Of a stretch of DNA of 64,000 bases, positions 1,027 to 48,900 are shown one piece after another. The translations under genes were made by a program, and so were the position numbers. Within the stretch, counting starts at the first letter, position 1, and each line of letters begins with the position of its first letter. The DNA comes from Magallana gigas (lineage: Eukaryota). The stretch lies in the NCBI RefSeq assembly GCF_963853765.1, contig NC_088858.1, forward strand, positions 12,834,001 through 12,898,000. Reading direction: 5' to 3'. The notes beneath the pieces are model-generated. The model ran no database searches. It was not told the DNA's origin and was given only the letters and a program-made list of their open reading frames with translations.

Positions 1027-1355
1027 TACAGACATTTCATGAAAGGATGCTGCTATGTAGCTCAGACATTGTGTAAAAATAGATTGAAACTATCATTTCT
1101 AAGGTTTACTTGGTTTAAATGTGTATGGCCAAATACAACGTCTCTTAATTCTTAACGATCTGTGACTTCAAGTTAAATTTATTGTCAATGAGTTGTTTGT
1201 GAGCTGTCATTGAACAAATGATTATTTCCACCAATCAACTGTTGACAAAATGTTATGGTATCAAGGAATTCGCACAAAATGAATATGTAAAAGAAAATAT
1301 CGAGTTTGAAGTTTTTTTAGTCAAAGCATTATAAACAGGTTGAACCAGCATTAAA

Positions 1356-1769
1356 CAGGTTGGGACCAATCTCCCAAATGGGATATAATAGCCCGTTTGG
1401 GGTATAATAGCCCAAATGGGATATAAATTTAAAGTGCAAAAAATAAAAAATTTTGATATAACTACGCATTAGAATAGATGAAATACAACAACTTTTGGTA
1501 AACAACTTTTTCTGTAGCTGTACTATTATGGATATTGATCCCTCAGTATATCAAAAACTTCTTGGGGATCAATCTTACAAACTATAGACATATAGAAAAA
1601 CTTCTTATTAATAACCAAAAGTTGTTGCATTTGATTCCCATTTAATGCGGATTTATGTCAAAAATTTAAAAATAAAAAAAAATTTTGGCACTTTAAATTT
1701 ATATCCCATTTGGGTTATTATATTCCAAACGGGCTATTATATCCCATTTGGGAGATTGGTCCCAACCTG
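1356..1769. mobile_element. MITE with ~80-bp TIRs, CAGG termini and 5-bp TSD (TTAAA)
   Basis: CAGGTTGGGACCAATCTCCCAAATGGGATATAATAGCCCGTTTGG at 1356 and its exact reverse complement ending at 1769; TTAAA directly flanks both ends. Confidence 0.9.
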
Positions 1770-2399
1770 TTAAACTGTGTAATTATATACCAAATTATTT
1801 AAGTGTCAAATAGTAAATTTTAAAGAGTGGCTATGCAATATTAAATTTGTTACGCATATGAAGGGATCGATAATCATTAACATAGTCTGCATAAGTTTTA
1901 TTCTGAAGAGAAAGTTGACCAAATAACTGAAATATCATCAATTAGGTAAAATATAAACAAAGAAACATGCTGTCAGAACAGTGATAAATAGTGCAAATGA
2001 TGCAGTTCTCGGTCTTACACAGTTCAATTTATCTTTGATAAGTGGAAAAAAATAATAAAAAACAGGCAAAATATAGACCAAAACATAAAAAACATACCAT
2101 TAGACATATTCGCTCTGATCAAGGCATAGGCATTGTCGCAGGAAGTGAAGAGGAGTGGAGGGTGTGATGTCATATTCTAATAATGTAGGTGTATGGTCTA
2201 TTCGTTGCCAGCAAAAAATCAACCCATGAGTATTTTTATCAATCATGTTTTCACTCCTAAAAAAGTCAATCTATGTTGTATTACTTTTCAAACTGAACAT
2301 ACCCTTACTAAGACATAACTTACATAACACCAATATTGAATTACACAAATATCTTATTTTTTAAGAAATATGATCGGGATCGCCATACAGAAAGACATT

Positions 2400-2407
2400 T
2401 TTGGCGC
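2400..2407 (+). promoter_or_regulatory. E2F-type site upstream of WDHD1
   Basis: TTTGGCGC (TTTSSCGC consensus) 30 nt upstream of the WDHD1 ATG; WDHD1 is an S-phase replication gene. Confidence 0.55.
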
Positions 2408-2436
2408 GCTTATCAAACAAGGAGGTAAACCTGATA

Positions 2437-5400
2437 ATGCCGTCCTGTTCGCCGTTGCGATACGCTCACAGCGAAGGATTAACAAGTTTGTGCTATGACG
2501 ATAAAGGAAAGTAAGTAGTTTGGTCAGTCGTGGTATAATGCACCAATTACGGAATCCTGATTTAGGCTGTTTGTTGAAATGGAATGTGCATGCTAAAATT
2601 TTCATTCATCTGTTCATTTGATATTATTCTGTTAGTACAAAATTAGTCGTAAATGTATTTTATTTTTTTTGTTGCTTATCAGATATATCTTGACCTGTGG
2701 CTCAGATGGAGATGTCAGAATATGGGAAGGGGCGGAGGATGATGATGCTATATCCCATGGAACTGGTGATAAGGCATTCTGTGTTGCATACAAGGTATTA
2801 AACAAATTTCAAAAAATTATTTTTTACTTAAGTTAAAACATCTCCAAGTGATTGAGCATGTTAGGGTCATCCATGCCAGAGGAAAACTTTGAATGATGAT
2901 CTTTGATTGGAGAAATAATTTAATGGGAGTATGTGATGTCAGACTCAACACACTGGTTTGAGCGCTGGCGCTAGATAAGTAGATTTCTTAAGGTAATTTT
3001 TAATTGGGAATGTTGACATCTTTTCTCCATTACGAAGCCACTCAGAATACCTCGCACAATTTCTTATCATTATCATTCGGGTCTGTTGCAATACAAAATC
3101 CCCATTGACATCACATTTTTTAGCCATGTATAATGATGTATTAAAACCTGATAAGCTAAAGGGGGGGTTCCATAAAATGACTTGATTACAGAGATGATGA
3201 ATTGATGTCAAAGACTTCCATCGTATTTTTTTTCACAGAATGACAGATTTTACATCGCTACTGATGCAAACACTGTGCAGGCATATACTTTCCCAGGGGG
3301 CTCTCCTGATGGGATTCTGGCAAGATTTACTGCCCCTGCCAACCATTTCTGCATCAACCAGATGGTAACGACATTAGTAGCTGGATCTAGGTGTGGACAC
3401 CTGCTTTATTCATTCACTTGGTCTATTGAAAAATGCAATAAAAATAAATATAGTACAACACAGAAATGCTTTTAAATTTTAAATATGATATATCCTTTGG
3501 AGTGATATCATTTTGAGTTATGTTGTAATGAAACAAGTTCACCAGATTAACATCTTCCATATAACCATATCACACTAATTGAAAGTAATGTTAAGTTGTA
3601 TTACTGTCTAATCAGAATTTTTGGACTGCAAAAACCCTTCTTTTATTGGAGATTGTCTTGTTAAAAGGAGTGCATTTTGCAATTTAATATACATAATGTA
3701 GATATTGTTTGTTCCAGTGACTTCACAATAAAACTTGTTGACATTTCCTCTGGGGACACCAAGAAGTTTGAAGGACATGAGGCCCCTGTATTAAGTGTAG
3801 CCTTAGACCCTAAAGAAGAATTTCTGGTTAGTGTACTGTGTTGAATGCCAAAAAATGTCTGGGCTTAACCATTTTGATTAAAACCTGTGAATAATTTCTT
3901 TTAAGCTTTCAGAGTTAAGGTTTTGTACAATTTATGTGCACATGCAGATAATTTATTTCTAAACAGGTAACCCAGCATTTTATATGCTCATATTTGATAA
4001 CATAAAATCTTATTTTCCCCTTCTGTATATTAATTTTCAAGGCATCCTCTAGTTGTGATGGAAGTGTGGTGATATGGAGAGTTGAGAATAAGGAGAAAGT
4101 GAAAAAGTTCCAAATCCTTCCCAAAGTGGGTGACATTAGGTAAAATTTGAATTCAGTAACACCAATATTTGAGTTCTCTGAACATGTGTGCTAATATGCT
4201 ATATGCATGTTATATTGAAATTGTAATGCAATGTGTTTTTGATCTTTTAAACAGTTTGACCAAAGGATTGTGTAGGCTATGTTGGGAAAAGAATGGGCAG
4301 GTAAAAATAATACTAATAAGACAAAATAGATTCACATCTGTGTTTAACTTTATTTCTCACTCTGATGGTTGTTTTTTAAGTGTGTGTATAATGGCACATA
4401 CATTGAATTGCAAATATTGTTTTGTTAAATTTTAGTTCCTGTATGTTCCTTTGGAGAATGAGATCCAGATCTACGACAGAAATTCCTGGTCAACAACTGG
4501 ATCAATACAAGACAGTCAGTTTTCTGGAGTATGTGACTAAAACATTCAGTTTTTTCTCACTCATCTGTTATTCTACCTGACCTCTTGACCGAATAATCTT
4601 TGAAAGAAAATGAAATTCCTCCCATTGCCAATCACCTTATATGTACATGTATATCACTTTGAAAGTTTTGCTGAATGCCTCTTAACCTTTGATAAAATAT
4701 CTGTAATTATGGTGACTGTATATGTAGGTGTACTCTGTCCTGGATCTCTCAACTGACGGAACACACCTGGCGGCAGGATGTTATGACGGCCATATTCTCA
4801 TATTTGACCTCAAAACCAAAACCTGTGTGGATAGGTATGATACAACTGCTTGACAAGCTTATGTACAGCAGATAACAGAAGGAAAATGAGGAGAAATTTA
4901 AAGCAAGTTGGGCTGGTGGTTGAAATGTATTATTTTTGTATGTATTTATTAATGTTTATAAAAACCCATCAAAGAAACATTTTCAGGTGATGCATGCTTG
5001 ATTGACTGGGTTGTAGACGATTTTTGTTCAAATTTAATCTCTAATGCTACTTCTAGGTCCTATGTACAAATGTAAATATTAACCATCATTGAAAACATCC
5101 ACTGAAACTTGTTATTTTACTTTAGGTTTAAACATGAGAGTGGATTGTCCATCATGTCACTATCTTGGAATCCTAGCAACCAGACAGAAATAGCATTTTG
5201 TGATAGAGAGGTAAGATAAGTTTTTAATCCCTTGATTTTAGGTTTGTACATAATGAATGGGAGACAACTCAAGCATCTTATATATTTTCAAGGTTTTTTT
5301 GTTTTCTTCTAGGGACAGCTTGGACTTTTGAGTGAAATAAATCTTAAAGGAGGAAACCAGGTACTACTTGAACAGCTTCAATAAGGGTTAAAACCTGACC

Positions 5401-8400
5401 TACTAGTTATTACTCTCTGTATGTTAAACACAGCATCTCTCAAGAAATTAGCAGACTTTCTTTTTTTTATAGCCTGTAAAGGAACAAAGAGTAAAAGAGA
5501 CTCTAGGGATTTTTGAGGATGACGATGATGACGCAGAATTAGTTCAAGCTTCTGATGAGCCGAGTAAAGAGCAGATTTTCGATGAAGACAGCAATGACTC
5601 AACACCAGCCAGTGTCTTAAAGCCCCTTGATGGTAAATCATTCAGAAATTCGCTTTGATTTTTTCATGAGTGTTATTCCCATTTGGATGTGATTTTTTTG
5701 GGATGTGGAAATGAGGATTTTAGTGGATTTTAAAGTTAAAATGGTAATTCTTGAGATTAGTGCAGACTTAAAGCTGATGTGATGTCTTCCCTTTTCTCCT
5801 CTGCAAACCACATCCCTGCTCCATAAGCATTTGTTGTATGGTATCAGTCTATTATTCTAAAATACACACTCTTACACTAAACTGCTGCATGTAAGACTGG
5901 TTTTGTTGTAGATGACTTGGCATCAGAGGATGGTGAGGCTCCTCCGGTCATCCCAGTACAGACCAGAATCATTGAGAGACCGGGGTTTGTACCAACACCC
6001 CCTCAAGGGGCCTTCCAGCCAGGATCCACCCCCAAACACCTCTCTAGCAGATTCATGGTCAGTGTTTTAAGATACTCTAGAGTTAATAAGCAAATGGTTT
6101 ATGTTGTACCTGTACATTGTAATGATTCGGTGGTTGAAAATTTGTAATATCTTACAATGTATATAATAATAAACTATGAAGATCAATACTTTCATTGCTT
6201 CTGATTCAAAATGTTTTACCTTGGTAGACTTTGGAAAATTTTTGTCTACCTCTGTAAAAGTGTTAAACTATGTGGTAGTTATTTTACTAATTGGTAAGTT
6301 TTTTTTTAAAGTTTAAGAATATACTTGGTAAAATTTAGGTAGAGATATTTGTATTTACAATTTTTTTTCTTTTTATTTTATTAATTTCACAAATCTTACA
6401 TTTAAATTATCAAATAATGGTCTCATTGATGATATTTTTCCTTCGCGTAGATGTGGAATGCTGTTGGAATTATAAAGCAGTTTAACACAGAAGAAGAGGA
6501 GTCAATAGATATCGAGTTCCACAACACGGCCATACACCATGCCATGCACCTAACAAACTCAGCGGGTTACACTATGGGGGACGTCTCGACAGAAGCTGTG
6601 GTCCTAGCCAGCCCAGGGGAGGACTCTGACCCAAGGTCTGCTCAGTGTCTGTACTCCTAAGTCATCAATTACAGTACATTTGAACTTCGGTATCTCGAAC
6701 ACCGATATCTTGAATACAATGGATCTGTCGAAGTGATTTTTAGGTCCAAAACACTTTAAACTTTAAGTATTTTACCCTTGATATCTCGAATACTAGGATA
6801 TCTCGAAATTTTTAACCAGTCCCATCTAGTTCGAGATAACGAGGTTTGACTGTACATGTTCATTATCTGTACTATGGAAAGCAGATTCTTTTCAAGTTGT
6901 CAGTTAGTGTCTGTTCTATTATGTTACATGTAATATTATGTCTGTACTCATAAGAACAATTCATTGAAGCCATCAATTATGGTACATGTAATTATGTACA
7001 TGTATAAAAAGAAAAGTCATCATTTTGAATACATTTTGGGGATTATTATTAGTTTGATTTAAAAAGGGATTTCTTATTATTCAATATATGCATGTAAGAT
7101 AAAAGGAGCTGGATGTATTGTATAGTACATCTGGTGGATTCAGATTAAAGGAATAATTTTTTATACCATATCTACAACCCAATGTTCAGACCATATATTG
7201 GTATGGCTGCATATATACAGATCTGCAATGTAATGTTTCAGTAAGTTGACCTGCATGCATTTTGGATCTTGGGATAATTCTAAGGAGTGGACCATTCCCA
7301 TGGATGATGGAGAAGCAATAGAGGTTAGTAAAGAAGCTGTTCAAGTTTAAATAAGTAGTATGACTTGCTTAGTAGATTAATATTTGGACTGTAAATCCAA
7401 ATATGTACTAAATATGTAAAATTCTTCAAAACAGAACATCAGTAAATAACTGGTTTATCAGAGAGTTGACTTGGTCAAAGCTTTTATGTCATTGATAAAG
7501 CTCTCTCACATGTTAATGGTCCTCACTGTTTAATTTTACTGTAAGGAGTAAAAACATATCAGGTTGTACATTTAAGTTCATTTAAAAATGTTCCAATGTG
7601 AACTTAATAAAGATAAATAAATAAATAAATATTTTTTTAAGCTAATTACTTGAATCAGTTTTGTGTAGTTATCACTGATTTTGATTTCTTCTCTTGTACT
7701 CCATAATGTTAGGCTCTAGCAATCGGCGAGGACTGGATTGCAGTAGCCACCTCAGGGAGACTAATCAGAATCTTTTCTCTGGGAGGCATCCAGAGGGATA
7801 TCTTCTCCATACCAGGTCCTGTGGTGTGCCTCTCAGCTCACACAAACCAGCTGCTCATTGCCTACCACAGAGGAATGGGTAAACATTTCAATGTTACATT
7901 GACTTGTAGATTGGCTTGTTCATTTTCTTCTTTAGGATCCTTGGCACTTTCTACTTAAATTTCTCAGTCAAATCAGCAAGAACTGTATTATTTTTAAGGA
8001 TAAAATTTTTAGCTTGTGTACATTAATTGAAAAAGAGACTAAGATGCAATTTTGGAGAAAAACCAGAATTTACCAAAAACAGTTGTTATTTCATGTAATT
8101 CCTTGCTGCATTCTTAATAAGGATCTTACAGTTAGTGGTCAAGTGCTTTGTCTCCCGAGTTCTTAATTTTGACAAAGAATAGTTTGACTTGACAATATGA
8201 TTTTCATATTGTGACAGACTGCTGTAAAAAAAATATGTACGTATAAGTCAATGGGTATGGAATCTAGCTGTGTAGTGCTCATGTTGTAATCTTTGTCAAG
8301 GTTTGCCGGGAGACCAGTGTCTTGGAGTACATCTGATGACAGTAGAGGGAGCCACCCAGATAAACCACCAGCCACTCCCCCTGTCCCACAAGAGCTCACT

Positions 8401-33868: not shown

Positions 33869-36800
33869 ATGTTGGGAAAGATCATTTTTGCGAGTTTGCT
33901 GGCTACATGTATTTTTGTGTGTGCGAACGCCGTTCCAGTATCTGTAAGTAATTGAAATAATATTTTTTTCCTATTTAAAAAGTTGCATAATTTATCAAAA
34001 TAATTTCATCAAACCGAAAAAGGGGTGTTCGTTCAAATGCCCTTCTTGTTTTATTTATTTCTTGAACTGGAGAAAGCATAAATTGAAATTGGAATATTTG
34101 GAAAATAAGCCTTGCGCCATTATAATTCGGTGATATATTTAAAAGAGTTTTAATTTTCAGGGAAATGATTTGAAGTCAATGCAAGAAGATCTGATAGAGG
34201 TCGAGCGAGCTTTACTTCGACTAGGCAGTCAAACGGATCCAGAGGCACCGATTCCAAATGTGTGTATACGTTGTCATTTCAAGTATGCGGTTTTATATAT
34301 TTGTCAGTATTTACTAGAATTTGGAAATTTAAAAATAAAAAACACGATCGTTAGAGAATATTTAAATCATTTTAGGCATCCATTAACAATTATGTTAACC
34401 ACAAGAAGCCACGAGTCCGAAAGATAAAAACTAAACATGTTCACAAACCAGCGGAACAAGAAGGACTCGAGTTCGAATCCGACATGTCGCTCTCGCCAGA
34501 GGAGAAGGAGGACATGGAAGAAATGGAATCGAGGGGGCGGATCCGGAGAAAGGCAGTGGCCAATGACATGAAACTGTGGCCCCGTGGGATTGTGTACTAC
34601 CAGTTGTCTAGTAGTCTAGGTCTGTTCTCCTTTGTACAACTGATGAATGAAGAATTCAGAACAAAATTTGTTGTATAATACTATTAATTTCCTTAAAACA
34701 TTTTTGTATTTATTTAACAAAGTTTTGCAAATTCATTCTTTCTTACGGATTTTTTTTTAAAGATAATATATTTTTGAAGAATTAATTTCAATTTGTTTTA
34801 TAATACAAGTTTTTTCTAGCTGCATATCTGTAGCTCCCGGTCTGAAAAAAATTCGAATGGGCGACCTGGTCGTCCATCCGCATTTTCTAGACCGGGAGCT
34901 ACATTCACGTTTTCATTTCTTTTCTCCTGTGTGAATTTATTTCCTTAATTTACTTTATTAATTTTTTTTTCTCGAATAATTGAAACTGTTTAAAACTCTT
35001 AGATGTTTAATGTTTTGAACTTACAGATGGTCAGGCAGTCTCTAATGTTAAATCCGCTATGAAACTGTGGGAGGATAACACTTGTCTGAGATTCAGGGAA
35101 TACAATTCAGCTTCCGGATCCTCGGATAGGATTATTTTTGTCGGATCACAGGGGTAATTAATCTAATTACTAATACATGTATATCATTAGTTGGTGGGTC
35201 AACTTTGTAGAGTGTTGATTGTTTTATGCTGCAAGATTTATTCACTGTAATGATATGCAGTTATTTACATTATTTCCTTATATCGCTTGTAAATATTATT
35301 GTTGTATATATACTAAGACCCCTTCATTGGGTCCCAGAAATGTTTATTAAAAGCGAGTTTAAATAGTTAATATCACTCACTGTAGAAAATATTTTGAAAA
35401 AATGCAAAGAAGTTATCCATCAATGCAGATATTGACTCGGTTTTCAATATGTTTAAGTTCAGCTAATTTCTGTTGATAAAAACAGAAAAAATGATTTAGG
35501 TACCTAGTTCAGAATAAGTAACCTCTTATTTGCCTTGAAGTTATGTTTTTTTTTTCAGCGTTATAATATTAGAACTATTTCATTATCTATATATTACACA
35601 GAGACTGTTTTGCTAAGAATATAATCTCCAAACACCGGTTCCAAACATCTTTGCTTTCAGATGCCAGTCTCCGATTGGTCGAAGAGGTGGTCCGCAGGAA
35701 ATCACGATTGGGGGAAGCTGTCAACAATCGGTTTGTTCACGATGATCAACCTTATATAATAAGATTGTTTTTTTTTAATTCAAACTTCTATGTTTTTTTT
35801 TTATTAAAAAGTACACATTGATTTCGTAGATTGGATCTATTGCACATGAAATTGCACATAGTATTGGATTTTACCACGAGCACTCTAGACCAGATCGGGA
35901 CGACCACGTGACTATTAACACCAATAATATACAACCGGGTTTTGAGGGGGATTTCCGGAAGATTGGCGCCAGGAGTATCGAGGACATTGAACCATACGAT
36001 GTGTCCTCTGTGATGCATTATGGTCCAACAGTGAGTGTCACACCCTGTCACGTGATATTAACAAACTCCTCAAGCTAGATATAAATTGAGAGGAAATAAT
36101 AATTTGGTGATTGCAATTCGTGTTCGATTTGTGTTGCAGTTTATGAGTCGGGACGGGCAGTCTAAAACAATAGTTCCACGGGTCAAGAACCTTCTGAACA
36201 CGATGGGTCAGCGAGATGCACTGAGTTTCCTGGACATTAAAACTGCCAACGATCTCTACAAATGCGCAGGTAAGTACGTGTTTGTAACAAGAAGTTTGTC
36301 TCTTGCCTTTAAAGTTCATTCCCAAAGTAATCATTACTCTTTTCAATTTTTATATTCGTAAATTTTTCAGCAAGTTGTCCAGTAAAGTTAAACTGCAAAA
36401 ACGAAGGCTATGTTGGACCAAACTGCGCCTGTCTGTGTCCCAATGGTTTGACAGGGAGGGATTGCTCGGAAGTTGTCCAAAGTAACACCAGTAGGTTGAT
36501 CTACTGATTGCATGTGGTTGCTATTTTCATTTGACTTAAATTTAAATCCGTTCATTCATAATTGCTGTACCTTTATGATTTTATATGAGTTTACGCCATT
36601 GCTTTTCAGACTGTGGTGGAGAGTTGACGGGAACGAGCGGAGTTCTCGCTTCTCCAAATTATCCCAGAGATTACTCATCATATGCTGACTGTCTTTGGGT
36701 TATCAAGGTTTAAAGTTTGAATTAAGAAAAATTTATTGGCCTATTAACATTAAGAAATTCTTAAGTTCTAATATCTATATTGATAGGGCAATTTATTAAT

Positions 36801-37234
36801 AGAATTTCAAGAATTCCGTTGTATCGATCAAGGCTTCGTATTTTAGGGACCAGTTGGATCAAGGATAACACTTATAATGGAGGACTTCCAAGTAGAGGAT
36901 GACTCCACGTGCTACTTTGACTGGTTGGAAATATTTCTTGGTGGACCACACATAGGGGGCGCTCGGTAAGCAACTCAGTATGGCCTCAACAATGATTAAG
37001 CCGGATTTTGCCGAAAACATTTGAAGTACATGTATCATTAGCAAAGAAATTAAAATACATGCATCTGTCTCTTTTTATTGTATTTTCAGATTCTGCGGAG
37101 AAGAAAGCGGAAGCGAGAACAGGCCCCCGCGGACCATAGAGTATCCTGGCAATACTCTGCTGATCAAGTTCCACGCAGACGACTCGAACGAGTTCTCCGG
37201 ATTTCGAGCCCGATACACCATACACTCGTCCTAA
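33869..37234 (+). CDS. Secreted astacin-family zinc metalloprotease (signal peptide-prodomain-astacin-EGF-CUB; BP10/SpAN/NAS-like), 11 exons
   Basis: Signal MLGKIIFASLLATCIFVCANA; prodomain FESDM..RIRRKA; LWPRGIVYY; HEIAHSIGFYHEHSRPDRD (35830-36030) and Met-turn SVMHY; EGF CKNEGYVGPNCACLCPNGLTGRDC; CUB CGGELTGTSGVLASPNYP...FRARY*. Confidence 0.95.
34829..34903. repeat. 75-bp near-perfect foldback hairpin in astacin intron 3
   Basis: TGTAGCTCCCGGTCT..ATGGGCGACC-T-GGTCGTCCAT..AGACCGGGAGCTACA. Confidence 0.8.
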
Positions 37235-37526
37235 TCAAAAGAAATCAATGAATCTGAATCATCATGCATTTTAAAACGAAATCAAGTGTATCGTCCAGAC
37301 GATGTTTTAATCGTGAACGACAATTTATGTTTATCTTATATGTACTAATTGAATTGTGCAACGCTGAATTTTCATGGGTTAAATTTTTTTAAGATTGATG
37401 GAAGAAGTTTTCATATTTTTGCTTGAATGTATAATAAACAGGTACTAAATAAAATCACTCTAAATTAACAAGTATTTTCTTCTTTTTTTATATTAGGGTT
37501 AAAATATGGTAATGCAGTACAAACAA

Positions 37527-37990
37527 TACTGTATAGGGGGAACTATTCGTCCACGTTTTATTTTCGCTGTTTTCGCCCATGTCGCAAGTGGGCGAATTTA
37601 AGACTGGGAAAATTCTAATTCTCCAATTAGAGCCATTTTAACAAGACCTTTCAGTAGGACGTAGCTCAAAACAAGTTAAAAATGACGCTGTTTCAAGCGA
37701 AATAAGCACCGATTGTGTAGTCTAAGCTAAAAAGCCATACATATCTTGTTGATTTCAGAGACCATGACTGAGTCAGCCTGAGTGGCTGACAATGAAATAG
37801 ACAGGCCTACGTCACATTGCTGTTTGGCACGGCTACCAAAATTCCTTCAAAGATCTTGTTAAAGAGAGATAGAACCATTTTATCTCTCTTTAACAACTTT
37901 GTATGGGTGAATTCAAATCGGTCGGGGCAAAACCGTTTGCAAGTGTAGAAAGACGAAAATAACACGGGCGAAAATAACATGTGTATAGAC
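37527..37990 (+). mobile_element. TA-type MITE interrupted by a second dispersed repeat
   Basis: TACTGTATAGGGGGAACTATTCG..GGGCGAATTTAAGACTGGG (family of 13522-13728), insert at ~37652-37835, then GGGCGAAAATAAC..TATAG. Confidence 0.55.
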
Positions 37991-38921
37991 AAAATTGATT
38001 ATTATGAACATTTTGAGATGTCTGCAATCCTGAAATAACCCAAGAACATTGTTTTATTTACTTCGGAGACCGTATATATAAACACTGCCACTTTTTTAAA
38101 TTTGCTTTTCATAAAGACAAATTGAATATTAACAAACTAAATATAATATATCAATTGCAGATCAACGATTAAAATGTATAAACTGACGATTGCAAAATAT
38201 ATATGCAACTTTAAATATACCCAAGTTTATTGAAACTGACAAAAAAATCAGAGGAAAATTTGTTATAAAATGAGATTTAACTCATGTGCACTATTACAAA
38301 GTTACATTCGGAGACTAATTCTTAATATTTAATTTGTTTGTCTTTTAATGTGTCACTTTCTTTCCCAACATAGTTACACGCATGCTTTTCGCCATGACCT
38401 TGACTGGCACCAAGCTTAGAAATTTTAGTTCAAGGTCACTACAAATCCCAATCCTTTAGACAGTCCTTTTGATTAAGTCTGTACTGTGTCCATAGATATG
38501 TAACGTTATACATGTATGTCTATGCTGTGTCTAAAGGAAAGAATTGGCTCTATAATGATTTTCAAAGAGATCTGTCGCTGAGACCTTCACTTTTGACAAA
38601 ATTAGTATATAGGTTCAGAACACATCCTCTCCTATCAATCTCTCACCAGAGGGCGTATTACGCTGCGCTACAACACCTCTGTTAACGTCTATATGCCAAG
38701 AATTTTCGCAAAACCCATTCTCAATCATGATAATATGTTTTACGGTGCTACCGTTCTTGCGAGCGCAGCAAGAATTACACACACCTTGCATCTTTGTCAA
38801 CTTATAGTTTTATTTAGGTATCAACGACCGTCAAAGAATTTTTGAGAGAGTATTGCTCTACAATAAGTGTGCTAAAGGTACTAATTTTAATGGTTATGAT
38901 ACATACAGCGCAACCCCCTTC

Positions 38922-38923
<2 letters not shown>

Positions 38924-38961
<38 letters not shown>
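38924..38961. repeat. (GA)n microsatellite
   Basis: Perfect AG run. Confidence 0.98.
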
Positions 38962-38963
<2 letters not shown>

Positions 38964-39955
38964 AGCCCGGTACCAGTTTGTAGGTGTGTAATTTCCCACT
39001 TTTAGATTTAATAGTCTGACTTTACGCAATATCTACATAATTTTTTAACTGTTTATTTTTTCATTTTATTCCTTTTTATTTATTTCAAAATGTCCTATTG
39101 TTTATTTCCTCCCTACTCATGCATGCACAATTAGCTTAAAAATGGATCGCATGCCAAGAAATGCCGTCCGGTTTAGAATAAGCCTAGCTAACGGTCTTCA
39201 ATTATACACTTAATTAAGGTCAGCCGCATTTGCTTGAAAACCCGCAATAAGGGATCGAGCCGAACTAAAGTTTCAGAGATTTGGGTCAGCGGCTGTTTAC
39301 GACAGTCTTTAGAGTGCCAATGTTTATAGCTTAGAGATACGTGTTGGGATAAGAATAAAAAGGACACAAGCTAAGATTTGGAAGACAGACACTTTGTAAT
39401 TAAAAAAAATAATTATGTGATTTTCCTCTTTTACTTATTCATCGTCTCCATATTGTTTACACTTAGAAACACAATCTCTAAGAATTATTTCTCTCTGAAA
39501 TACAGAATGTTATGTTTTGTTTGGGTTTTTTTTTTTTATAAACCTAGCATTTTTTAAAAAATTAAGCCGATATACGTACATGTAATATTGATGTACGTCA
39601 TGTAAAGTGTTAAATACACGGGTATCTTTTTTGTTAAGAGAGTTTTAATTAAGGTATGGCTAACTAACCTTGTATTAAAGGAACTGAATAAATATGAAAT
39701 ATTCAATCGGATGTAAATGTATGACCACCGCAGGGTTTATTATTATGCGATGTTTCATATAATAAATGTTACATGAAAGTTTATAGCGTTAATTTTTAAG
39801 GTATGCTGTAGAATGTATATAACACTTTTTTTATTGTTAGTTTTGAATATATTTCGTTAAACAGACACTGCACCGATCAATTATCTGTATTGGTGGGAAA
39901 TCCGAAATGCAAAAATTCTGGTAAACCGGTAAAAACTAAAACAAAAGTTGTAAAA

Positions 39956-42900
39956 ATGTCGAATTTTTTTCGACCATGGGTGGAGACACGGCCGGCTGTA
40001 CCTGTGCATAGACGTGTAATGTTGCCGTTGAATAACAACATGCAGGTACGTAACTACTTGTTTATGGATGATTCATAGTGTAGGTGATCAATACATTAAA
40101 GTTACCCACTCAGTAGAATGATAACTATAGGCTATATTTTAGCAAAAAATTAAGCCGAAATACTTATATAGTGAATATGCAGAATTTATATAAAAGTCAA
40201 TGTACGTGTATTTGACAAATTTATGTTGATATTGTATGTCATGTCAGTTATTCAGTGAAGCTTTATAATTTTTTTAATTTTTATTTCACATGCATATTTT
40301 ATTGCAATAGGACCACAATGATATGGAAAATAAGAAAACTCCACGCAAAGTAAAAGGATTTTTTGAGCTGAAACATTCTCAAAGAGGAGAAAGGAAAAGA
40401 AAATACCAAAGCGCTTTTCAAGAAGCTTCAAGCTGTGTTCACAGTGATATTTCCTCCATCAAAGTCCAGTTCAATTTTGATAATGGACATGTTTTATCCT
40501 TTTTTCCCCGCAAAGTGTCCCCTGATGAAAATGCTAGTTTGGAAGATGAAGGTGTTAAGAAATCTCAAGACCTTGCTGTAATTCAACAGGTTATTGCAGT
40601 TAAGGACAAGTTCAGAATTTCTGACGAAGCTTTACATGAACTTCATATGATTGGTTCAATAATACCAAGCAAGTCAGCCATCAATACAGAAAAATACCGT
40701 CTCAACACAACTCTTGAAATAATGAGCCATCCAACAGTAAGTACATGTACCGTGCTTTTTTATGTGTTGACCACTGACTTATTTAGCACGTTTTATTATC
40801 TTATCATTTGAATATCAATTTTTAGAAACCGATCGATCATAGCACAAGCCAATTTACTTTTATTTATTTTTTTAACAAAGGCAGACTGCAGTACTAGAAA
40901 GCTAGAGCACATTCTAGAGTTTGTACTTCAACACCAAAAATACCAGAAGTATATTGAGAATGACACTGTTACCCTGCGTTTTTCCTGTGATGGTGCCAAA
41001 ATTGCCAAAAATATCTCCTCAGTAAGAGGGGTGTTCAAGATTTTGGCACCAAGACAGTCATTGCCAGATAAGCTTGAAGATTTGAGCATGTGTCCGGAAG
41101 ATGAGTTTACTCTTTTCTTTTACATTGGTGAGAAACTTTGTATTTATTGAAATTTCCTGTCATGTATTTTGGAATTATTATTTCGATTATCACATGTTTA
41201 TTTCAATTAAGGAGATGAAAATCGATGCAGTTTAGAGGAATATGCCTCTGGGACATTAAGAGACATGGAAAATGTTCAATTGAATGGAATTGTAATCAAT
41301 GGAAGAAAAATCTCTGTAAAGTGGTAAAGTTATCTCATCATCTACGGTTATCGTTTTTTTTTATTCTATACCCTATTTGTTATTATAATATCATTTCAAA
41401 TTCTAAACTGGTACAATTATATATTTTGTAGGATAATGACTTGTGATTGGAAGGCACTTGCCTTACTGAGGGGAATTAATGGCGCTCAATGCGAATTTTT
41501 CTGCATGTGGTGCCACTGCTCCAAAAAGCAGATATGCGATTTCAGTAGTAAGTAACTGTTGTAAATTGATAAAATGATACAAACATTGTAATAAAAACAA
41601 TAGCAATTGCTGGACAACTAATGTGATTTTATAATGTTTTTTGTAGTCCCATCTTGGTTGATACAGAGATCTAAAGAAGAACAACAAACTGTTCTAAATT
41701 CTGAAAAGAAAACGTTCGGGTACAAAGATACAGATCTCTGCCCTTTCATTTCATACCATGACATGCCCATTGATGATCTTCACATGCGCATAAGGATTTC
41801 TCTAAAGCTCTTCAATCAGGTACATTGTCTCTTATTAATATACACGAATGTATACTTTTAACGACTCTGCTAACTATCTGCATACACAAGATCTCATTGC
41901 TTGATTTTGACAATTTTAAATTCAGCTTGTGACCTGGGCAATAGACCAGAAATCTGAAGACAATTTGAAAAGAGAACTGAAACGCGTAGGTGTCAGTTTC
42001 AGAATGTGGGAGGAAAGGGGGGATGACAAATTGAACACCAAAGTGAGGAAATGGTCTCAACCAACAGGTATATATATGCCTTTCTTTAAAAAAAAATACT
42101 ATAAGTGTTTGCAGTTCTTGTAGCAAATCTTCTGAAAAATATTTGCCATTTCATTTGTAGGTGATGATTTACGTAAAATTATAAGAGACGTTCAAATCCA
42201 TCATATTCTGGACAATAAAAAGGACAGGCACTACGTATCAATAGAAAGCCTTTCAGTACAGCAGTTGAGGGACGAATTAACTAACAGACAGCTTTCCAAA
42301 AAAGGAAAAAAACCCGAGCTTGTAGCCCGATTAAAAGATGCTGTCGGAAATAACACTAAGGTATATTTACAGAAACTCAAATTCACTGAATAACATTTAT
42401 ATTTCCTGAATGTTTACATAGTAATATAAAACTTTTCATTCATGTTGTTTTAGATGAGGAGGAATGTAGGCTCTCGTCTTCAGGTATCGTACGACTTTTC
42501 AGAAGATGAAGAACAGGACCTGGACGTCGCAGCCCTGCAAGATCTGTGGTCAGGTTTCCATACGCTCATGGAAAGTCTCCGGGCATTACCTGGAACAGAT
42601 AATTACAAAGATATGGAAACTTTTGCAAAAGAAGCAAAGGAATGGGCCACTGAATTTCGAAAGCAAACCTTCGATGAAGATGTTATCCCATACATTCATG
42701 GTGTGTAAAAATGTTAAAGATTCTATAAAGGAATCATACAGCCTATCCCTACTTCTTTCAGGGTATAAAATTCATTTTGTTTAAATTACATTTTCAGCTA
42801 TGGTTTATCATGTACCACAGTTTCTGCAGACATACCACTACATACATGATATCGGGGTTGCCCAAGTTGAGCGTAAAAATTTTGACCATCGTCAAGCGTA

Positions 42901-43167
42901 CTTTGGAAGCACCAACAGAAATGGGTCCAAATGGAAAAAACATGTCTCAAAGCAGGTACATACCATTATTCAGATAGTCAATCTGCTTGATTTGTTTCAC
43001 AAATTTTTCTGCCTTCTGCAATGAATAATTAATCAAAGATAAATATGCATTTCAGTCCTTGTCATACTTGTGATCTTTAATTACAGATTCTTGAGAGGGA
43101 AAATAGAATGCTTTGGTCCAGTCTACATGGAACTGTACGTGAAAAAAGAAAATATGTAAAGTCTTAA
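39956..43167 (+). CDS. RAG1-core/Transib-like DDE transposase with internal SAP domain (~663 aa, 11 exons)
   Basis: Exons 39956-40045, 40311-40736, 40881-41127, 41212-41323, 41432-41547, 41647-41819, 41926-42067, 42161-42360, 42454-42700, 42798-42955, 43087-43167; all GT-AG, in phase, no stops (1992 nt). Motifs: TVTLRFSCDG, MTCDWKALALLRGINGAQCEFFCMWC, PIDDLH, TGDDLRKII, PYIHAMVYHVP, QVERKN. From memory these correspond to RAG1 VVVKESCDG, GYDEK...CTLC, IDALH, NGNFARKLM, NYFHKTLAHVP and GNESGN. Confidence 0.85.
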
Positions 43168-44845
43168 ATACCGTCGTTTAGCTACAGTCCCAGTAACCAT
43201 GTTTCTACGAGACCTCGTAAAAGTTACGTGAATCCAGGATGGACCACGAACATACAGTATTACAGGGTCACATAGCTGTGGTCGGTTCTCCTCAGCATCT
43301 TTCCACGTGCATCTAAACAAAGATTTTTATAATGAAGCAGATCTTTATTATTATCAAGCAATATTTATTAAGAAGCCCACAAAGATGAACAAATATTGTA
43401 TTTCTATGTATAGAAATGTTGTTTTGTTATATTAAAATAATATTGTATCACACTTTTGATATTATTGTTATTGTTTTTACTATTACAATTAAGTAAATAA
43501 TGTATAAAATTGATGTTCCTTATTGCAATAATATTGTATCACACATTTGTTATTATTATTGGTTTTTTTTAAATTAAGTAAATAAACATTCACATTGGAT
43601 TAAATTTATATAATCATACCTTTTACAATTATTGTGTTGGTATTGCTTTCTCTCCTTATATCCCCACCAGACATGAATAAACTCTTTGAAGGAGACAAAT
43701 GTTTCTGTTGATGTTTTGTAACATCTATTTGACCAGTTCTCTCCAATGGCAGAAGTCATTTCTTCACCTGTAAAAATAAACATAAATTACTTAACAATTA
43801 TTTTTAGTAACCGAACACTTGCATTCCAAGTATGTCTTTCAAGATACCTCCTGTCTCCACTTGCATGGGACCAAAACTTTAAATAGACTTGTCATATGCT
43901 CAAGAAAACAATTATCATAATATTGCTTCAGATAGTTCATTACCTGTGAGGTAGAAATCCACATTTCCATTGTCTGTTGGCAGAGTATCCATCAAAGACC
44001 TGAAGTATTTATTAAAACTTGCACAAGAAAAAGGCACTTTCACTGTTGTCCTCGACTGGATGCCTAATGCACCATCAGGTGTACGGCGTGCATCGCCTAA
44101 ACTGTCAAAGATGGCCTGTCGCAGTGCCATAATGTCATCAGGGTTGTTCCTGCAGTCTATTTTGTTGGAATCTAAATTCCTGCGGTGAAGATGACAAGAG
44201 AGGGGGTTTCCTTTATTTCTTTCAATGAATTGCTGCAATTCCTGGTTTCCATCTAAACTGACCCAGGTTGATGGTCCCTCCCAGTCCTTCCATTTTACTA
44301 GCACTTCTTGCTCCCTCCTCTCTAAAATGTCTTCAATCTCCCATAGTTTCTGAGATAAATTGTTGAGAATAGTTTAAAACATGAATGATTATTCTATTAT
44401 TGTTTTTCTTAATTAGTTTGGATAATTCATAATTTTTCCCGATGTAGGATATTCGTGATCTAAGAGTGGCGCTAGATCCGCCTACACACTTTGACTGAGA
44501 TTTGTATACCTGCTTCAAATAAATATAAATAATAGAATATAGTTCTAAAATACACATAAAGGTAGATCAAAAGGGAACCCTAACGATATTTAACGATCGC
44601 AAACCATAATATATACATAGATATGTCTATACATATTATAAACATCATCAGGGACTTGTACTATGATTATTACAACTATTCTTAGAAATGAATATGTTAC
44701 AAAAGTTTAAATGTAAGTATATACGATATTTGTATAATAATATTTACCGTACCTCTTTCGACTTGTTTTCCTTTAAACTTCTAAAATTTAAATTTTCCTC
44801 CCAATCTCCGAATCTTACAGGGGCTCTTCTCTTTCTCTGTGCCAT
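43123..44845 (-). CDS. Chromodomain-containing protein (~278 aa, 4 exons) convergent with the transposase
   Basis: Exons 44845-44753 (MAQRKRRAPVRFGDW.., NLS-like), 44349-43944, 43767-43620, 43312-43123; phases 0/1/2 are consistent. Chromodomain KLWEIEDILERREQEVLVKWKDWEGPSTWVSLDGNQELQQFI, followed by an unrecognised ~190-aa domain. Confidence 0.8.
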
Positions 44846-45158
44846 TTCTTAGATAAGAATGCAGCTGAAGAAAGCACACAGGGAGCTCGATTTCACTTAA
44901 TCGGTTCATCGCCGTGGTAACGCTGACCGCCTGGGATGTGGTCACTAATTTATAACGGGGTTGTGAAAGCGGAATATTGGAGCAGAATTTCTTGGCATGA
45001 TATGACAGTAAATTATGGCTCTTGCTGATATATATACATAAAATCTCTATATTAAAAAAAATTAAAAACAAATCATACGTCAATGAGGCAGGTACCGCAG
45101 TCTATACTGAAATAGCTAGTACACGCATTACAGATGTTTGATCCACCTCTAAATTTAT

Positions 45159-45193
45159 CGCGGGAAATATAGCGCGAGTGCACTGTGACGTCA
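45159..45193. promoter_or_regulatory. Candidate POLD2 / bidirectional promoter: E2F site and palindromic CRE
   Basis: GCGGGAAA (45160-45167), TGACGTCA (45186-45193), AG|GTATGG donor at 45242 (probable 5'UTR exon), second TTTCCCGCG at 45445-45453, acceptor TTTCAG at 45780. Confidence 0.6.
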
Positions 45194-45467
45194 TCCATGA
45201 CTTTGTTCGTCTTTGTTTACGTTTCTCGACTCAATACAGAGGTATGGAAGCATGTAACAAATCTTTTGAGTCTCGCCAAAGCATATGCGGTACTCAAAAC
45301 GTGTCTTCAAACTTTAAGTCACTGTAAATTACGAGTTAAAAGTCGGCCATTTTTGGCATAGCACCACGGGTGAAAACATTAGAGAGCATTATGGGACGTA
45401 GACAAAAAATTTTGTTTGATGAACTGTAGGTTTAGCTCGTTCTTTTTCCCGCGCACACTGGTTCTTA

Positions 45468-45515
45468 GAGCTCGCTTCGCTCGCCGGCGCTACGCGCCGG
45501 CGAGCTGCGCTCGCT
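45468..45515. repeat. GC-rich hairpin, possible Helitron-type terminus
   Basis: Perfect 11-bp stem CTCGCCGGCGC-tac-GCGCCGGCGAG (45480-45504), flanked by CTCGCTTCG and GCGCTCGCT in AT-rich DNA. Confidence 0.55.
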
Positions 45516-45903
45516 ATTATAAATTATAGTTTTATATGTAGGCTATTCAGTCTACATTTCGACGTTAAAGCCTCGCTAAAAAGTGGAGCGAAGCAGGAAC
45601 GATAACTCTGGGTAGAGATTGCCTCTCCTAAATTTACGTGATTGTAATGGTAATACACATAAGATATGATATATAATTGAATTTGAGTTTTTACTACAAA
45701 CATGGTTCCTCAGACAGATAGACAGACAGTGAAAAAACCCACGTAATATATTTGATATCGTTCGTGAATAACTATTTCAGACTCAATGGAAAAGTTCATG
45801 CTTACAGGAAACAGTTTTCGTACGAAATAATATCTTCGATTGACTATCGCGCCTCAAGAAACAAAAGATTTCCACTGGCGCGAACGGTGATAAACAAAAA
45901 GAA

Positions 45904-48900
45904 ATGTTTGAGAAAAAAGGGGGTAATCATCCCGACGACCTTTTGTCAAAACCTTCACAGACACACAAAGCATGTGAAAGACAATCGGGCAACTTTTCAG
46001 ACTGCTCACATAGGTTTCTACTGAAGGATAAAACTTTCAGCAGGCAATATGCACATTTATATGCAGAAAGATTGTGGGAAGTACGTCCGAAAGTAGAGGC
46101 TTCTGCAAGAAAAAAATGGGGTATAAATAGAATATGTTTTGTTTCATATTTAATTTGTAATATTTTGTTTTAGTGGTTAATAGATTTACACCTTTTTAGA
46201 ACAAGATGTAAACACATGACCTGCTGAATTTTTTTTATTACACTCTGGCCTATATTTAATAATATCACAAATCAAATTGCTGAGTGTTCAAAACTAGTTG
46301 GTACTTGCTTGTTAATATATAGCTTCATGTCAAACAGTGCCTTATACGGTTCATACGATGAGACTGACACATACATCGGTATACAGGTCCAGTACAATCT
46401 CCAGATTTAGCTATATAGCTTGAATAAGCTAAATAGCTTTATTAAGCTATTTCAGAATAGCTTCATTTAGCTATTTTGTCATACATTTTTCTTAAATGTG
46501 TAATTTTTTCAGTATGTATAAAAAATCGCGCTTTAGTGCAGTGATAATTTTCAACTTTGAACTGTTATATAAACAATGCATGTAAAGATTACTCAAAAGT
46601 TTGCGTCTCCTTAAAGAGACTTTGCACTAAAAGTTTTGGGGCAACTGATTCATGAACACACAGTTACTTCTTGAATGAAATATAAAGGAGGTCAGTTATG
46701 GTAAACAAGATAATTGATTGGTAATAATTTATCACAATGAGAAGAAATCATACTTATCCACGCCTCATTGCACACAAAGTGGTGAACAGTTACCCAAACA
46801 ATGGAAATGTATTTTTTGCTTAAAAGTGTTTAAATCTGCAGTGTTAAAACTATCTTGCATTTGGGTCAAGTTTATAATGGTCAGTGGCGCAAATATGAGT
46901 AGCAAGTTAATTGCGATTTTTCGTCCATTTCTTACAATTAATATTTTCTTCAAAAACTGCATATAAATAGCTTTATTAAGCTATTTTGAATAGCTTTATA
47001 AAGCAATATAGCTTTTTCAAGCTATATAGCTAAATCTGGAGATTGTACTGGACCTGGTACATATACCTTTAGGTACTTGTGACAGTAGTTTTTTTGTCCC
47101 CCGCCGCAACGCGGTGCGGGGACATAGAAATGCCGGGCGTCCGTCCGTGCGTCCGTGTGTCCGTGCGTCCGTGTGTCCGTGCGTCTGTGCGTCCGTGTGT
47201 CCGTGCGTCCGTGTGTCCGTCCGTCACACTTTTTTGTAAGCGCTCTCATGCCTACAAATTTTGACGGATTTTCATTAAATTTATACCAAATGTATATACC
47301 ACTATTACCTTGGTCAAGTTCGAAAATCAGCATTGGTCGATACTACTTGTTGGAGTTATGGTACTTTGACCGCAATAATGACTCTGTTTTATCCAAAAAT
47401 TGACCTTGTAAGCGCTCTCATGCCTACAAATTTTGACGGATTTTCACTAAATTTATACCAATTGTATATACCACTATTACCTTGGACGAGTTCGAAAATC
47501 AGCATTGGTCGATACTTTTTGTTGGAGTTATGAGACTTTGACTGCAATTATGACTCTGTTTTATCCATAAATTGACCTTGTAAGCGCTCTCATGCCTACA
47601 AATTTTGACAGATTTTCATTAAATTTATACCAAATGTTTATATCGCTATTACCTTGGTCAAGTTCGAAAATCAGCATTGGTCGATACTTTTTGTTGGAGT
47701 TATGGTACTTTGACCGCAATAATGACTCCGTTTTATCCAAAAATTGACCTTGTAAGCGCTCTCATGCTTACAAATTTTGACAGATTTTCATTAAATTTAT
47801 ACCAAATGTTTATACCACTAATACTTTGGTCAAGTTCGAAAATCAGCATTGGTCGATGGACTCGATACTAGTATACTGCTTGACCGGCGGGGGACTCAGG
47901 AATTCTATTCTTGTTTACTAGGTTTTCATTTATTAATGCACATGACGGTTGTGTGTGCTGTGTATATCACTGTAATTATACCCTGTCCCAAGTTTCTGCT
48001 TCCAACACTTTTTGTTTGATATTTCGAAAACCATAAATACCTTTGTGCCCAATAGGGCTGGGACGATACTGTACTTAGCCGATTAGGTACATATCACAAT
48101 AAATGAGATGCGATACGATACATATCACTATACATTGCAACTTAATGAAAACATGAATAAGGGCTTAAATTTTATTGAATCTGTCAACGTATTACCGCAT
48201 GTCCAAAGTGATTTCATTATATGAATATATATATCATTTCAAAATGAGCATTGCACAATTTACAAATTACTTTAGTCTTGTATTCACTACTTTTTCATAA
48301 AGAAGTAATCCAAAAGTTTTCCACACTCCAGAATTAGATTCATAACAGTTTTGACAACTTTAAGAGGTTTTCCGCTATCTTTGTACTTTCATGATAGGCG
48401 CGCGGACTAAAAATAGCCAATATATATAGCTTGGATATTTTTGGAAATTAAAAAAAAGTTTGCTAAGGTATTGTTGTATTATTGGTAAATGTATAGATCC
48501 AAATATCGTCAAAATAAATACCGCGATGCACAGGTGCATCAGTGGATTGTCCCATTCCTAGTGCCCAACTACATTTATCCATTAGAATAAAAAAAAAGTT
48601 CAAATTTTCTGTTTTGAAACGCCCCCGCCGCTGCAGGTTCCAACACACAACCAAAAATAAAAAGTCTACGTTAAGTTCAAAAATAAAAAGTCTACGGGTA
48701 TATTGCATGGCAAACAACATGAAAACAACATGAAAAGTTCCAGAATGATAACGTTGAAAAATTGAGAGAATTGTTCTGAGTACCGTACGGTGCTTCCAAT
48801 TGGAGAAAAGGTGTTAAAATTCCTCATTATAAATCTCCGTAAGAAATTTGTTTTTGTTCATTTTAATTTCTCGGTGTATAAAAAAATGAAATGTCAATGA

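Follow-up and report, generated by a model that had tools for sequence, protein, structure and literature searches.

A transposase-like gene on the forward strand of a 64,000-nucleotide stretch of the Magallana gigas genome (contig NC_088858.1, positions 12,834,001 to 12,898,000; hereafter the window) raises the question of what a SAP domain, a motif found in a range of nucleic-acid-binding proteins, is doing inside the core of a DDE transposase. A preliminary description of this DNA, made from the letters alone, had placed a canonical SAP motif in exon 8 of the gene, between the second and third catalytic residues. Is the motif genuine, does it remain in the protein, and what could it contribute?

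The analysis reported here establishes that the SAP domain is a working part of the transposase-like protein, and not a chance match. The gene as a whole is an intact, expressed and intron-rich gene of the DDE transposase type, of the kind represented by RAG1/Transib and the CMC (CACTA/Mirage/Chapaev) group, and I consider it probable, though far from certain, that the SAP domain is in this protein an extra module for binding DNA or chromatin.

A SAP domain encoded by exon 8

The gene model was derived from contigs of four oyster runs (X1, X2, X3 and X15), placed on positions 39300–45200; X15 is a declared RNA library, and X2, X3 and X15 represent three studies. It describes a single protein of 663 amino acids, encoded by 11 coding exons on the forward strand (39956–43167), from an ATG at 39956 to a stop codon at 43165–43167, with RNA-supported joints and a frame that is open throughout. 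The numbering of the eighth exon used in the preliminary description holds in this model. Exon 8 (42161–42360; 200 nucleotides, with a start phase of 1, an end phase of 0, and AG and GT flanks) encodes, in order, the GDDLRKII motif, a lead-in of 19 residues, the SAP domain and the residues VGNNTK.

The SAP domain itself (helix, extended loop, helix) spans positions 42241–42342 on the forward strand, corresponding to residues 462–496 or thereabouts of the protein. When the exon-8 peptide was compared to the Pfam SAP family (PF02037), its residues 27–60 matched profile positions 2–35 of 37 with a score of 44.9 bits (E-value 8e-12), the curated gathering cut-off for this family being 23.9 bits. 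Solved SAP domains were also matched in a phmmer search of the PDB, namely those of Tho1 (4uzw and 1h1j, E 0.006) and of hnRNPUL1/E1B-AP5 (1zrj, E 0.008), as well as that of MKL1 (2kvu, E 0.6). Judged by its sequence, the motif is genuine and far beyond chance, as had been proposed.

Both joints that flank exon 8 are found in RNA contigs. That between exons 7 and 8 (42065/42159, +2) is present in X2, X3 and X15, and that between exons 8 and 9 (42360|42454, i.e. 42358/42452 +2) in X2 and X15, with a matching loose end in X3. Transcripts that skip exon 8 had been named beforehand as the observation that would speak against the motif; no such joint is listed in the RNA contigs, although contigs can miss rare forms. 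Skipping would also shift the frame, because 200 nucleotides is not a multiple of three. The protein product carries the SAP domain constitutively and in frame.

Around the motif, some details of the preliminary description have to be revised. It had joined RLKDA directly to VSYDF, while the RNA joins 42360 to 42454, adding 16 residues (VGNNTK and MRRNVGSRLQ) at this junction. The range that it assigned to the insert (42161–42500) includes exon 8, and also takes in intron 8 (42361–42453 on the forward strand; 93 nucleotides, GT..AG) and the start of exon 9. The acidic linker that it described past the SAP domain is present, in the form of the stretch SYDFSEDEEQDLD, and is encoded by exon 9 (42487–42525) rather than by exon 8. 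Residues 444–527 are made up of the 19-residue lead-in, the 35-residue SAP domain, and a flexible linker of 30 residues, basic at first and acidic further on.

Position of the SAP domain relative to the catalytic motifs

The catalytic triad (D209, D297 and E609) and the zinc ligands (C316, C319, H584 and H589) are all intact in the 663-residue model. The first catalytic aspartate, D209, is found in the SCDGAK motif of exon 3 (40881–41127, forward strand, as are all exons of this gene). The second, D297, is in the TCDWKA motif of exon 5 (41432–41547), which also encodes the zinc ligands C316-x2-C319. Exon 9 (42454–42700) encodes the basic-then-acidic linker followed by conserved helices, and ends in PYIH, the first histidine ligand, H584, being its last full codon. 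H589 and the catalytic glutamate E609, in the QVERKN motif, are encoded by exon 10 (42798–42955).

In human RAG1, the catalytic residues are D603, D711 and E965, and the zinc ligands are C730, C733, H940 and H945 (PMC10579426). All four offsets between these ligands and the adjacent catalytic residue are identical in the oyster protein and in human RAG1: C316 and C319 lie 19 and 22 residues past D297, and H584 and H589 lie 25 and 20 residues ahead of E609. In contrast, D297 and E609 are separated by 312 residues, versus 254 for D711 and E965, in agreement with the values given previously. The excess had been estimated at about 60 residues and ascribed to the SAP insert. It amounts to 58 residues, all of them in the span from the Cys pair to the His pair (265 residues from C319 to H584, versus 207 from C733 to H940 in human RAG1), and this fits the SAP domain and its linkers.

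The SAP domain was expected to lie between the TGDDLRKII and PYIHAMVYH motifs, and this is what the model gives, with TGDDLRKII at residues 435–443, the SAP domain at about 462–496, and PYIHAMVYH at 581–589. It is located after C-x2-C and before H-x4-H, that is, between the two halves of the zinc site, and this order of motifs places it in a helical zinc-binding region equivalent to the ZnH2 part of the RAG1 ZnC2/ZnH2 insertion. The proposal that it interrupts the insertion domain of a RAG1/Transib protein is therefore borne out as regards its position between the zinc pairs, while a place for the protein in RAG1/Transib proper finds no match in sequence searches. Two further correspondences with RAG1 serve as leads only: TGDDLRKII presumably corresponds to the DNA-contacting R-M-N-G-N-F-A-R-K segment of RAG1, and LQDLWSGF presumably to the helix before W893.

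Conservation of the SAP domain in related copies

No full-length annotated relative was found in the libraries searched, and the sole named match is P0054, a fragment of 84 amino acids from Magallana gigas in UniRef. With exon 2 as the query, an exhaustive phmmer search gave nothing longer than exon-sized fragments, and word searches with the relative P0018, with exon 9 and with exon 8 led to close relatives alone. Several species are represented in the family, and 33 exon-2 fragments, at 25–98% identity, have in common the intron that follows exon 2. A metagenome scan yielded seven loci, all in one assembly (JAAUYG01), in which exons 3 and 5–7 have the same positions.

Exon 8 is visible in fairly close relatives only, and all of these have it. 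SAP-bearing copies, at 72–91% identity, were identified in ENA and Logan contigs (P0047, P0048, P0050, P0051, P0053, L017 and L018–L020), and one of these, P0048, matches the Pfam SAP profile with 43.8 bits (E 1.7e-11). A more distant relative at 53–69% identity, known from spliced RNA contigs (L011–L013), keeps the SAP domain in part, with only its first helix and loop. A survey of homologues for exon 8 had been suggested earlier; it supports the exon in all fairly close relatives, with L011 only partial, and with the best locus of JAAUYG01 (L008) ending 86 nucleotides past exon 7, before exon 8 is reached.

The surrounding catalytic motifs are conserved as well. That of D209 (exon 3) is found in L001, L004–L007 and L011, that of D297 and the Cys pair (exon 5) is the same in L008 and L011, including its spacing, and the His/Glu motif of exon 10 is conserved in L011, L014 and L018. 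Exon 9 is highly conserved in the relatives (alignment A3).

Compared to L018 (77.7% nucleotide identity), the ratio of non-synonymous to synonymous substitution rates (dN/dS) is 0.08 over 273 codons, with a dS of 0.82. For the 35 codons of the SAP domain it is 0.07, with 7 non-synonymous and 14 synonymous differences (Fisher p 5e-7); dS relative to this copy ranges from about 0.8 to 1.25. Such a low ratio indicates that the SAP domain is maintained as coding sequence in related oyster copies, with codons that purifying selection has held in place. It is probably a trait of the whole transposase family in oysters, rather than a one-off insertion at this locus.

Two observations on these relatives should be recorded. 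The transcript represented by L011:1–3709, L012 and L013 consists of three parts in three different frames, with exons 9–11 well conserved, and has L014 as its genomic counterpart. Three entries considered as homologues at 52–55% identity (L015, L016 and P0044) were rejected, because they come from the same locus and species, as reads in which bisulfite treatment has converted C to T; bisulfite-converted entries in a protein collection can mimic distant relatives.

Relationship to RAG1, Transib and CMC transposases

Three weaker lines of evidence agree on a RAG1/Transib-type core, namely the motif geometry described above, a fold match, weak but specific, between the N-terminal helices and the dimerisation and DNA-binding domain (DDBD) of HzTransib/RAG1, and the neighbours found with a protein language model. 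For the fold comparison, AlphaFold2 was used to model a contiguous open reading frame of 289 amino acids in the spliced RNA contig of a relative (L011:1616–2482, 56% identical). In an exhaustive VIA-align search of 48,161 chains with this model, HzTransib (6pqn) ranks first, with a Z-score of 5.1 and a root-mean-square deviation of 2.5 Å over 48 residues. The top ten hold five RAG1/Transib entries (6pqn, BbRAGL 6b40, and RAG1 4wwx, 6cij and 6dbi), with Z-scores of 4.3–5.1. All five align the same three helices, matching model residues 73–122 to residues 461–510 of RAG1, in the DDBD. These helices correspond to the most conserved motif of the oyster family, KD.YRISD.ALHELHM..IPSKN.

The language-model search of the Atlas with the same 289-residue piece gave, as its top three named clusters, RAG1 preR/RNase H/ZnC2 (0.93, 173–179 shared features, recognition 2662), with DUF1280, an arthropod RAG1_RNase_H cluster and Transposase_21 (tnp2) ranked next. 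For P0042, the piece of a relative that comes just past the SAP domain, the neighbours are a RAG1_ZnH2 cluster (0.91) and DUF4218 (0.84), with weak recognition. RAG1 clusters outrank CMC clusters in both searches. The Atlas fold search gave no match.

CMC and Transib have been described as sister groups with a common architecture (bioRxiv 10.64898/2026.08.26.747230), and Chapaev transposases are marked by an N-terminal Chapa (NZD-like) domain with two zinc fingers (bioRxiv 10.64898/2026.01.24.700457). A Chapa-like zinc finger is absent from the N-terminus of the oyster protein, which is short, with no Cys/His cluster and a lone Cys up to residue 170; an in-frame stop is present upstream of the start codon. 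In the relatives the N-terminus is Q-rich and coiled-coil-like. At the other end of the protein, the C-terminal Cx2Cx3GHx4C motif of RAG1L is also absent, with no Cys past residue 362. I have classed it as a transposase gene of the RAG1/Transib-CMC type, of either a Transib or a Chapaev-like subgroup.

Gene structure, partner gene and flanking sequences

Besides the exons described above, the gene comprises exons 1 (39956–40045), 2 (40311–40736), 4 (41212–41323), 6 (41647–41819), 7 (41926–42067) and 11 (43087–43164). The ten introns are all GT..AG. Nine of the ten junctions are joints in RNA contigs of the four runs, and the first intron junction is shown by two pieces of one X3 contig. A single copy of the gene is present in the window, as seen with tblastn. 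At 42631, run X1 has a variant with an in-frame deletion of 9 nucleotides (3 amino acids), which is present too in P0036–P0038.

A partner gene lies tail-to-tail with the transposase-like gene, on the reverse strand (42999–44845; 5 coding exons with CT..AC joints, giving a model of 268 amino acids). The two genes overlap, with the last exons of the partner falling within intron 10 and the 3' untranslated region of the transposase-like gene, and the partner is conserved beside the relatives in L011, L013, L014 and L018. Its best Pfam match is to the Chromo family and is not significant (E 0.12, 12.8 bits, with a cut-off of 25.1), and Pfam gives no kelch or PHD match. An antisense intron on the reverse strand (42587–42960, CT..AC joint 42586/42961 in X3) belongs to a spliced transcript that crosses exon 10 into exon 9, so that the RNAs of the two genes form a natural, overlapping sense/antisense pair. 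Both genes are even fused in a single Logan contig (X2 record 17).

I looked for the ends of a mobile element around this two-gene cassette. No flanking terminal inverted repeats were found in 37500–47000, and no CAC-type ends with a 5-bp target duplication at the locus. CACWGTG occurs at the frequency expected by chance, and no pair of it flanks the cassette, the occurrence at 45181 being without a mate.

Just upstream of the partner start is a stretch, at about 44999–45200, where contig depth climbs to 1350–6100 in three runs out of four. Many contigs pile up here, and loose ends fall at 44999/45004 and 45168. It holds CACTGTG (45181–45187) and the palindrome TGACGTCA. There is no second copy of it in the window, and Rfam and tRNA scans of its very deep portion (45013–45200) were blank; it behaves as a high-copy dispersed repeat. 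At 47000–47900, repeated units of ~190 nucleotides with near-identical open reading frames on both strands are found beside a short repeat coding for His/Arg/Thr/Asp, and are probably a satellite or an array of miniature inverted-repeat transposable elements. Astacin/CUB-type exons upstream of the cassette (35900–37250, forward strand) and a DNA-polymerase-delta-subunit-2-like exon downstream of it (45900–46180, forward strand) were noticed by eye only, and on this basis the cassette appears to be flanked by two ordinary host genes.

Possible role of the SAP domain

The SAP domains of Tho1, Ku70, PIAS and SAF-A have an affinity for DNA that is non-specific, AT-rich or directed to bent DNA. In the oyster protein, the SAP domain may be loosely or flexibly tethered on the ZnH2-like surface of the catalytic body, where it would bind DNA or chromatin and add an affinity of this sort. 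It could in this way help the enzyme to hold its donor or target DNA, or to stay on chromatin. That it alters target capture, as the preliminary description put forward, is speculation. In RAG1, ZnH2 contacts DNA beside the cleavage site, and provides the greater part of the RAG2-binding surface (PMC10579426). A built-in DNA binder at this place is plausible, because there is no RAG2-type partner here. In full-text searches of the literature, no paper came up that connects SAP domains with Transib, Chapaev or transposases, consistent with the earlier remark that SAP is not known from RAG1 or Transib.

A number of results weigh against the interpretation of this gene as an intact SAP-bearing transposase of the RAG1/Transib-CMC type. 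The Pfam RAG1 models match none of the exons and none of the relatives (P0018 included), phmmer searches with the exons do not match the RAG1, BbRAG1L or HzTransib chains of the PDB, and hmmsearch with the family profiles A2 and A3 gives no RAG1/Transib match. The AlphaFold2 model of the L011 piece is confident for residues 1–120 and poor in its catalytic part (predicted local distance difference test, pLDDT, of 51–71), and Foldseek finds no match with it. The DDBD fold match obtained with this model, at a low Z and over about 48 residues only, is suggestive rather than proof. The structure predicted for the piece that follows the SAP domain in a relative is unusable (pLDDT 51), and its fold matches are generic helices. 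Several related copies are damaged: L018 and L020 (L018:111–552, L020:203–649) have TGG changed to TGA at the codon of W431, and a 2-nucleotide deletion at the start of exon 8; L018 has one additional 1-nucleotide deletion; L017 has frameshifts, with a dN/dS of 0.36; and in L011 exon 6 is absent, exon 7 has a 1-nucleotide deletion, and exon 8 ends after KKGKK, with the second SAP helix lost. Run X1 also has a variant at 40505 with a frame-breaking 1-nucleotide insertion in exon 2, from an allele or a paralogue.

One intact copy among decaying relatives is a picture typical of a transposon family. In L018 and L020, the 2-nucleotide deletion sets the SAP domain in phase 0, and a strong alternative donor, AAA|GTGAGG, is present upstream of the TGA. 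Its use may restore an open frame, in which case these copies would reflect compensated re-splicing rather than pseudogenes. That the SAP domain is a functionless relic in an ageing transposon copy is very improbable. The stops and frameshifts near or inside exon 8 of related copies, and the L011 transcript without a second SAP helix, speak for this. However, the reading frame in the window is intact and correctly spliced, SAP included, the SAP codons differ from those of L018 by 14 synonymous versus 7 non-synonymous changes (dN/dS 0.07, p 5e-7), and the Pfam SAP score is equally high in P0048 (E 1.7e-11).

The absence of any RAG1/Transib similarity detected by HMMER leaves room for the protein to come from Chapaev, from another CMC group or from a more distant DDE lineage. 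The comparison with the RAG1 insertion would then be an analogy, and a SAP domain might be ordinary there. CMC clusters (DUF1280, Transposase_21 (tnp2) and DUF4218) are indeed among the language-model neighbours, and CMC and Transib, as sister groups, share their architecture (bioRxiv 10.64898/2026.08.26.747230). I regard such an origin as possible, if on the unlikely side: the Chapa/NZD-like zinc finger of Chapaev is missing (bioRxiv 10.64898/2026.01.24.700457), RAG1 clusters stand above CMC clusters in both Atlas searches, and the zinc ligands are spaced exactly as in RAG1, down to the residue. The only matching solved structures are also from RAG1/Transib, although no CMC structure exists to compete with them. 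It is rather unlikely that the gene pair has been domesticated, with the SAP domain tethering the protein and its chromodomain-like partner to chromatin or to the nuclear scaffold, or recruiting proteins, and with DNA cutting maybe no longer the purpose. Ten introns, at positions common to relatives of 30–60% identity, would suit a host gene, as would the lack of terminal inverted repeats and of a CACWGTG pair around the cassette, a tail-to-tail partner conserved in several lineages, strong purifying selection and steady expression. Yet the D, D, E triad and the four zinc ligands are intact and conserved, which a pure tether would not need, the many decaying copies suggest a transposon family more readily than one essential host gene, and the chromodomain of the partner is not significant (Pfam E 0.12).

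I retain as the probable interpretation a transposase gene of the RAG1/Transib-CMC type in which SAP is an added binding module. A more specific proposal, that it represents a distinct oyster lineage of RAG1-fold transposases with no RAG2-type partner, a SAP domain in ZnH2 and a chromodomain-like reader as partner, this copy being maybe catalytically competent or newly domesticated, is quite doubtful at this stage. If true, this would be a different way for a RAG-like enzyme to locate DNA and chromatin. It would also suggest that accessory functions in DNA or chromatin recognition are easily swapped on a RAG1-type scaffold, a point that is central to the transition from transposase to V(D)J recombinase. 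The case is a compact one, with one exon, one 35-residue motif, and natural copies that have lost this motif.

Comparison with known systems

The oyster protein resembles Transib (HzTransib, 6PQN) in being a single polypeptide of ~650 amino acids without the N-terminal zinc-finger region of RAG1, and in having a D, D, E triad whose second D and E are set apart by a long, helical insertion that binds zinc; 6PQN also gives the best, though low-scoring, structural match for the N-terminal helices as modelled. It differs from Transib in the lack of similarity detectable by HMMER, in the ten spliceosomal introns of its gene, and in the SAP domain of its ZnH2-like region. In addition, neither CAC... 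terminal repeats nor a 5-bp duplication were found for the oyster gene, and it has a conserved convergent partner gene.

RAGL transposons are known from oysters (PMC7204232, PMC4411706). In these, RAG1L possesses N-terminal zinc fingers and a C-terminal Cx2Cx3GHx4C motif, and is accompanied by a convergent RAG2L with a kelch propeller and a PHD finger (PMC7204232). The gene pair described here shares with RAG1 and RAG1L the spacing of the Cys and His pairs, a putative DDBD-like unit of three helices and the convergent two-gene layout, and these proteins are its nearest language-model neighbours. In contrast to them, it has neither N-terminal zinc fingers nor a RING, no Cx2Cx3GHx4C tail and no Pfam RAG1 match, and its partner is not a kelch/PHD RAG2L. 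Its distance from the second D to the E is 58 residues longer, with the SAP domain in this excess.

Chapaev and the other CMC transposases, as the sister group of Transib, have the same general core, and CMC-type clusters are found among the neighbours of the oyster protein. Unlike Chapaev, it lacks the Chapa zinc finger, and neither ends nor a target duplication could be defined at its locus.

Ku70 and PIAS are, like Tho1, further examples of nucleic-acid binders with a SAP domain. The oyster SAP domain shares with those of Tho1, the hnRNPUL1/SAF-A family and MKL1 a motif of 35 residues with the pattern L..L.V..LR.EL..R.L...G.K..L..RL. In the oyster protein it is internal to the catalytic core of a transposase, instead of forming a module at the end of a protein of the scaffold, repair or transcription type.

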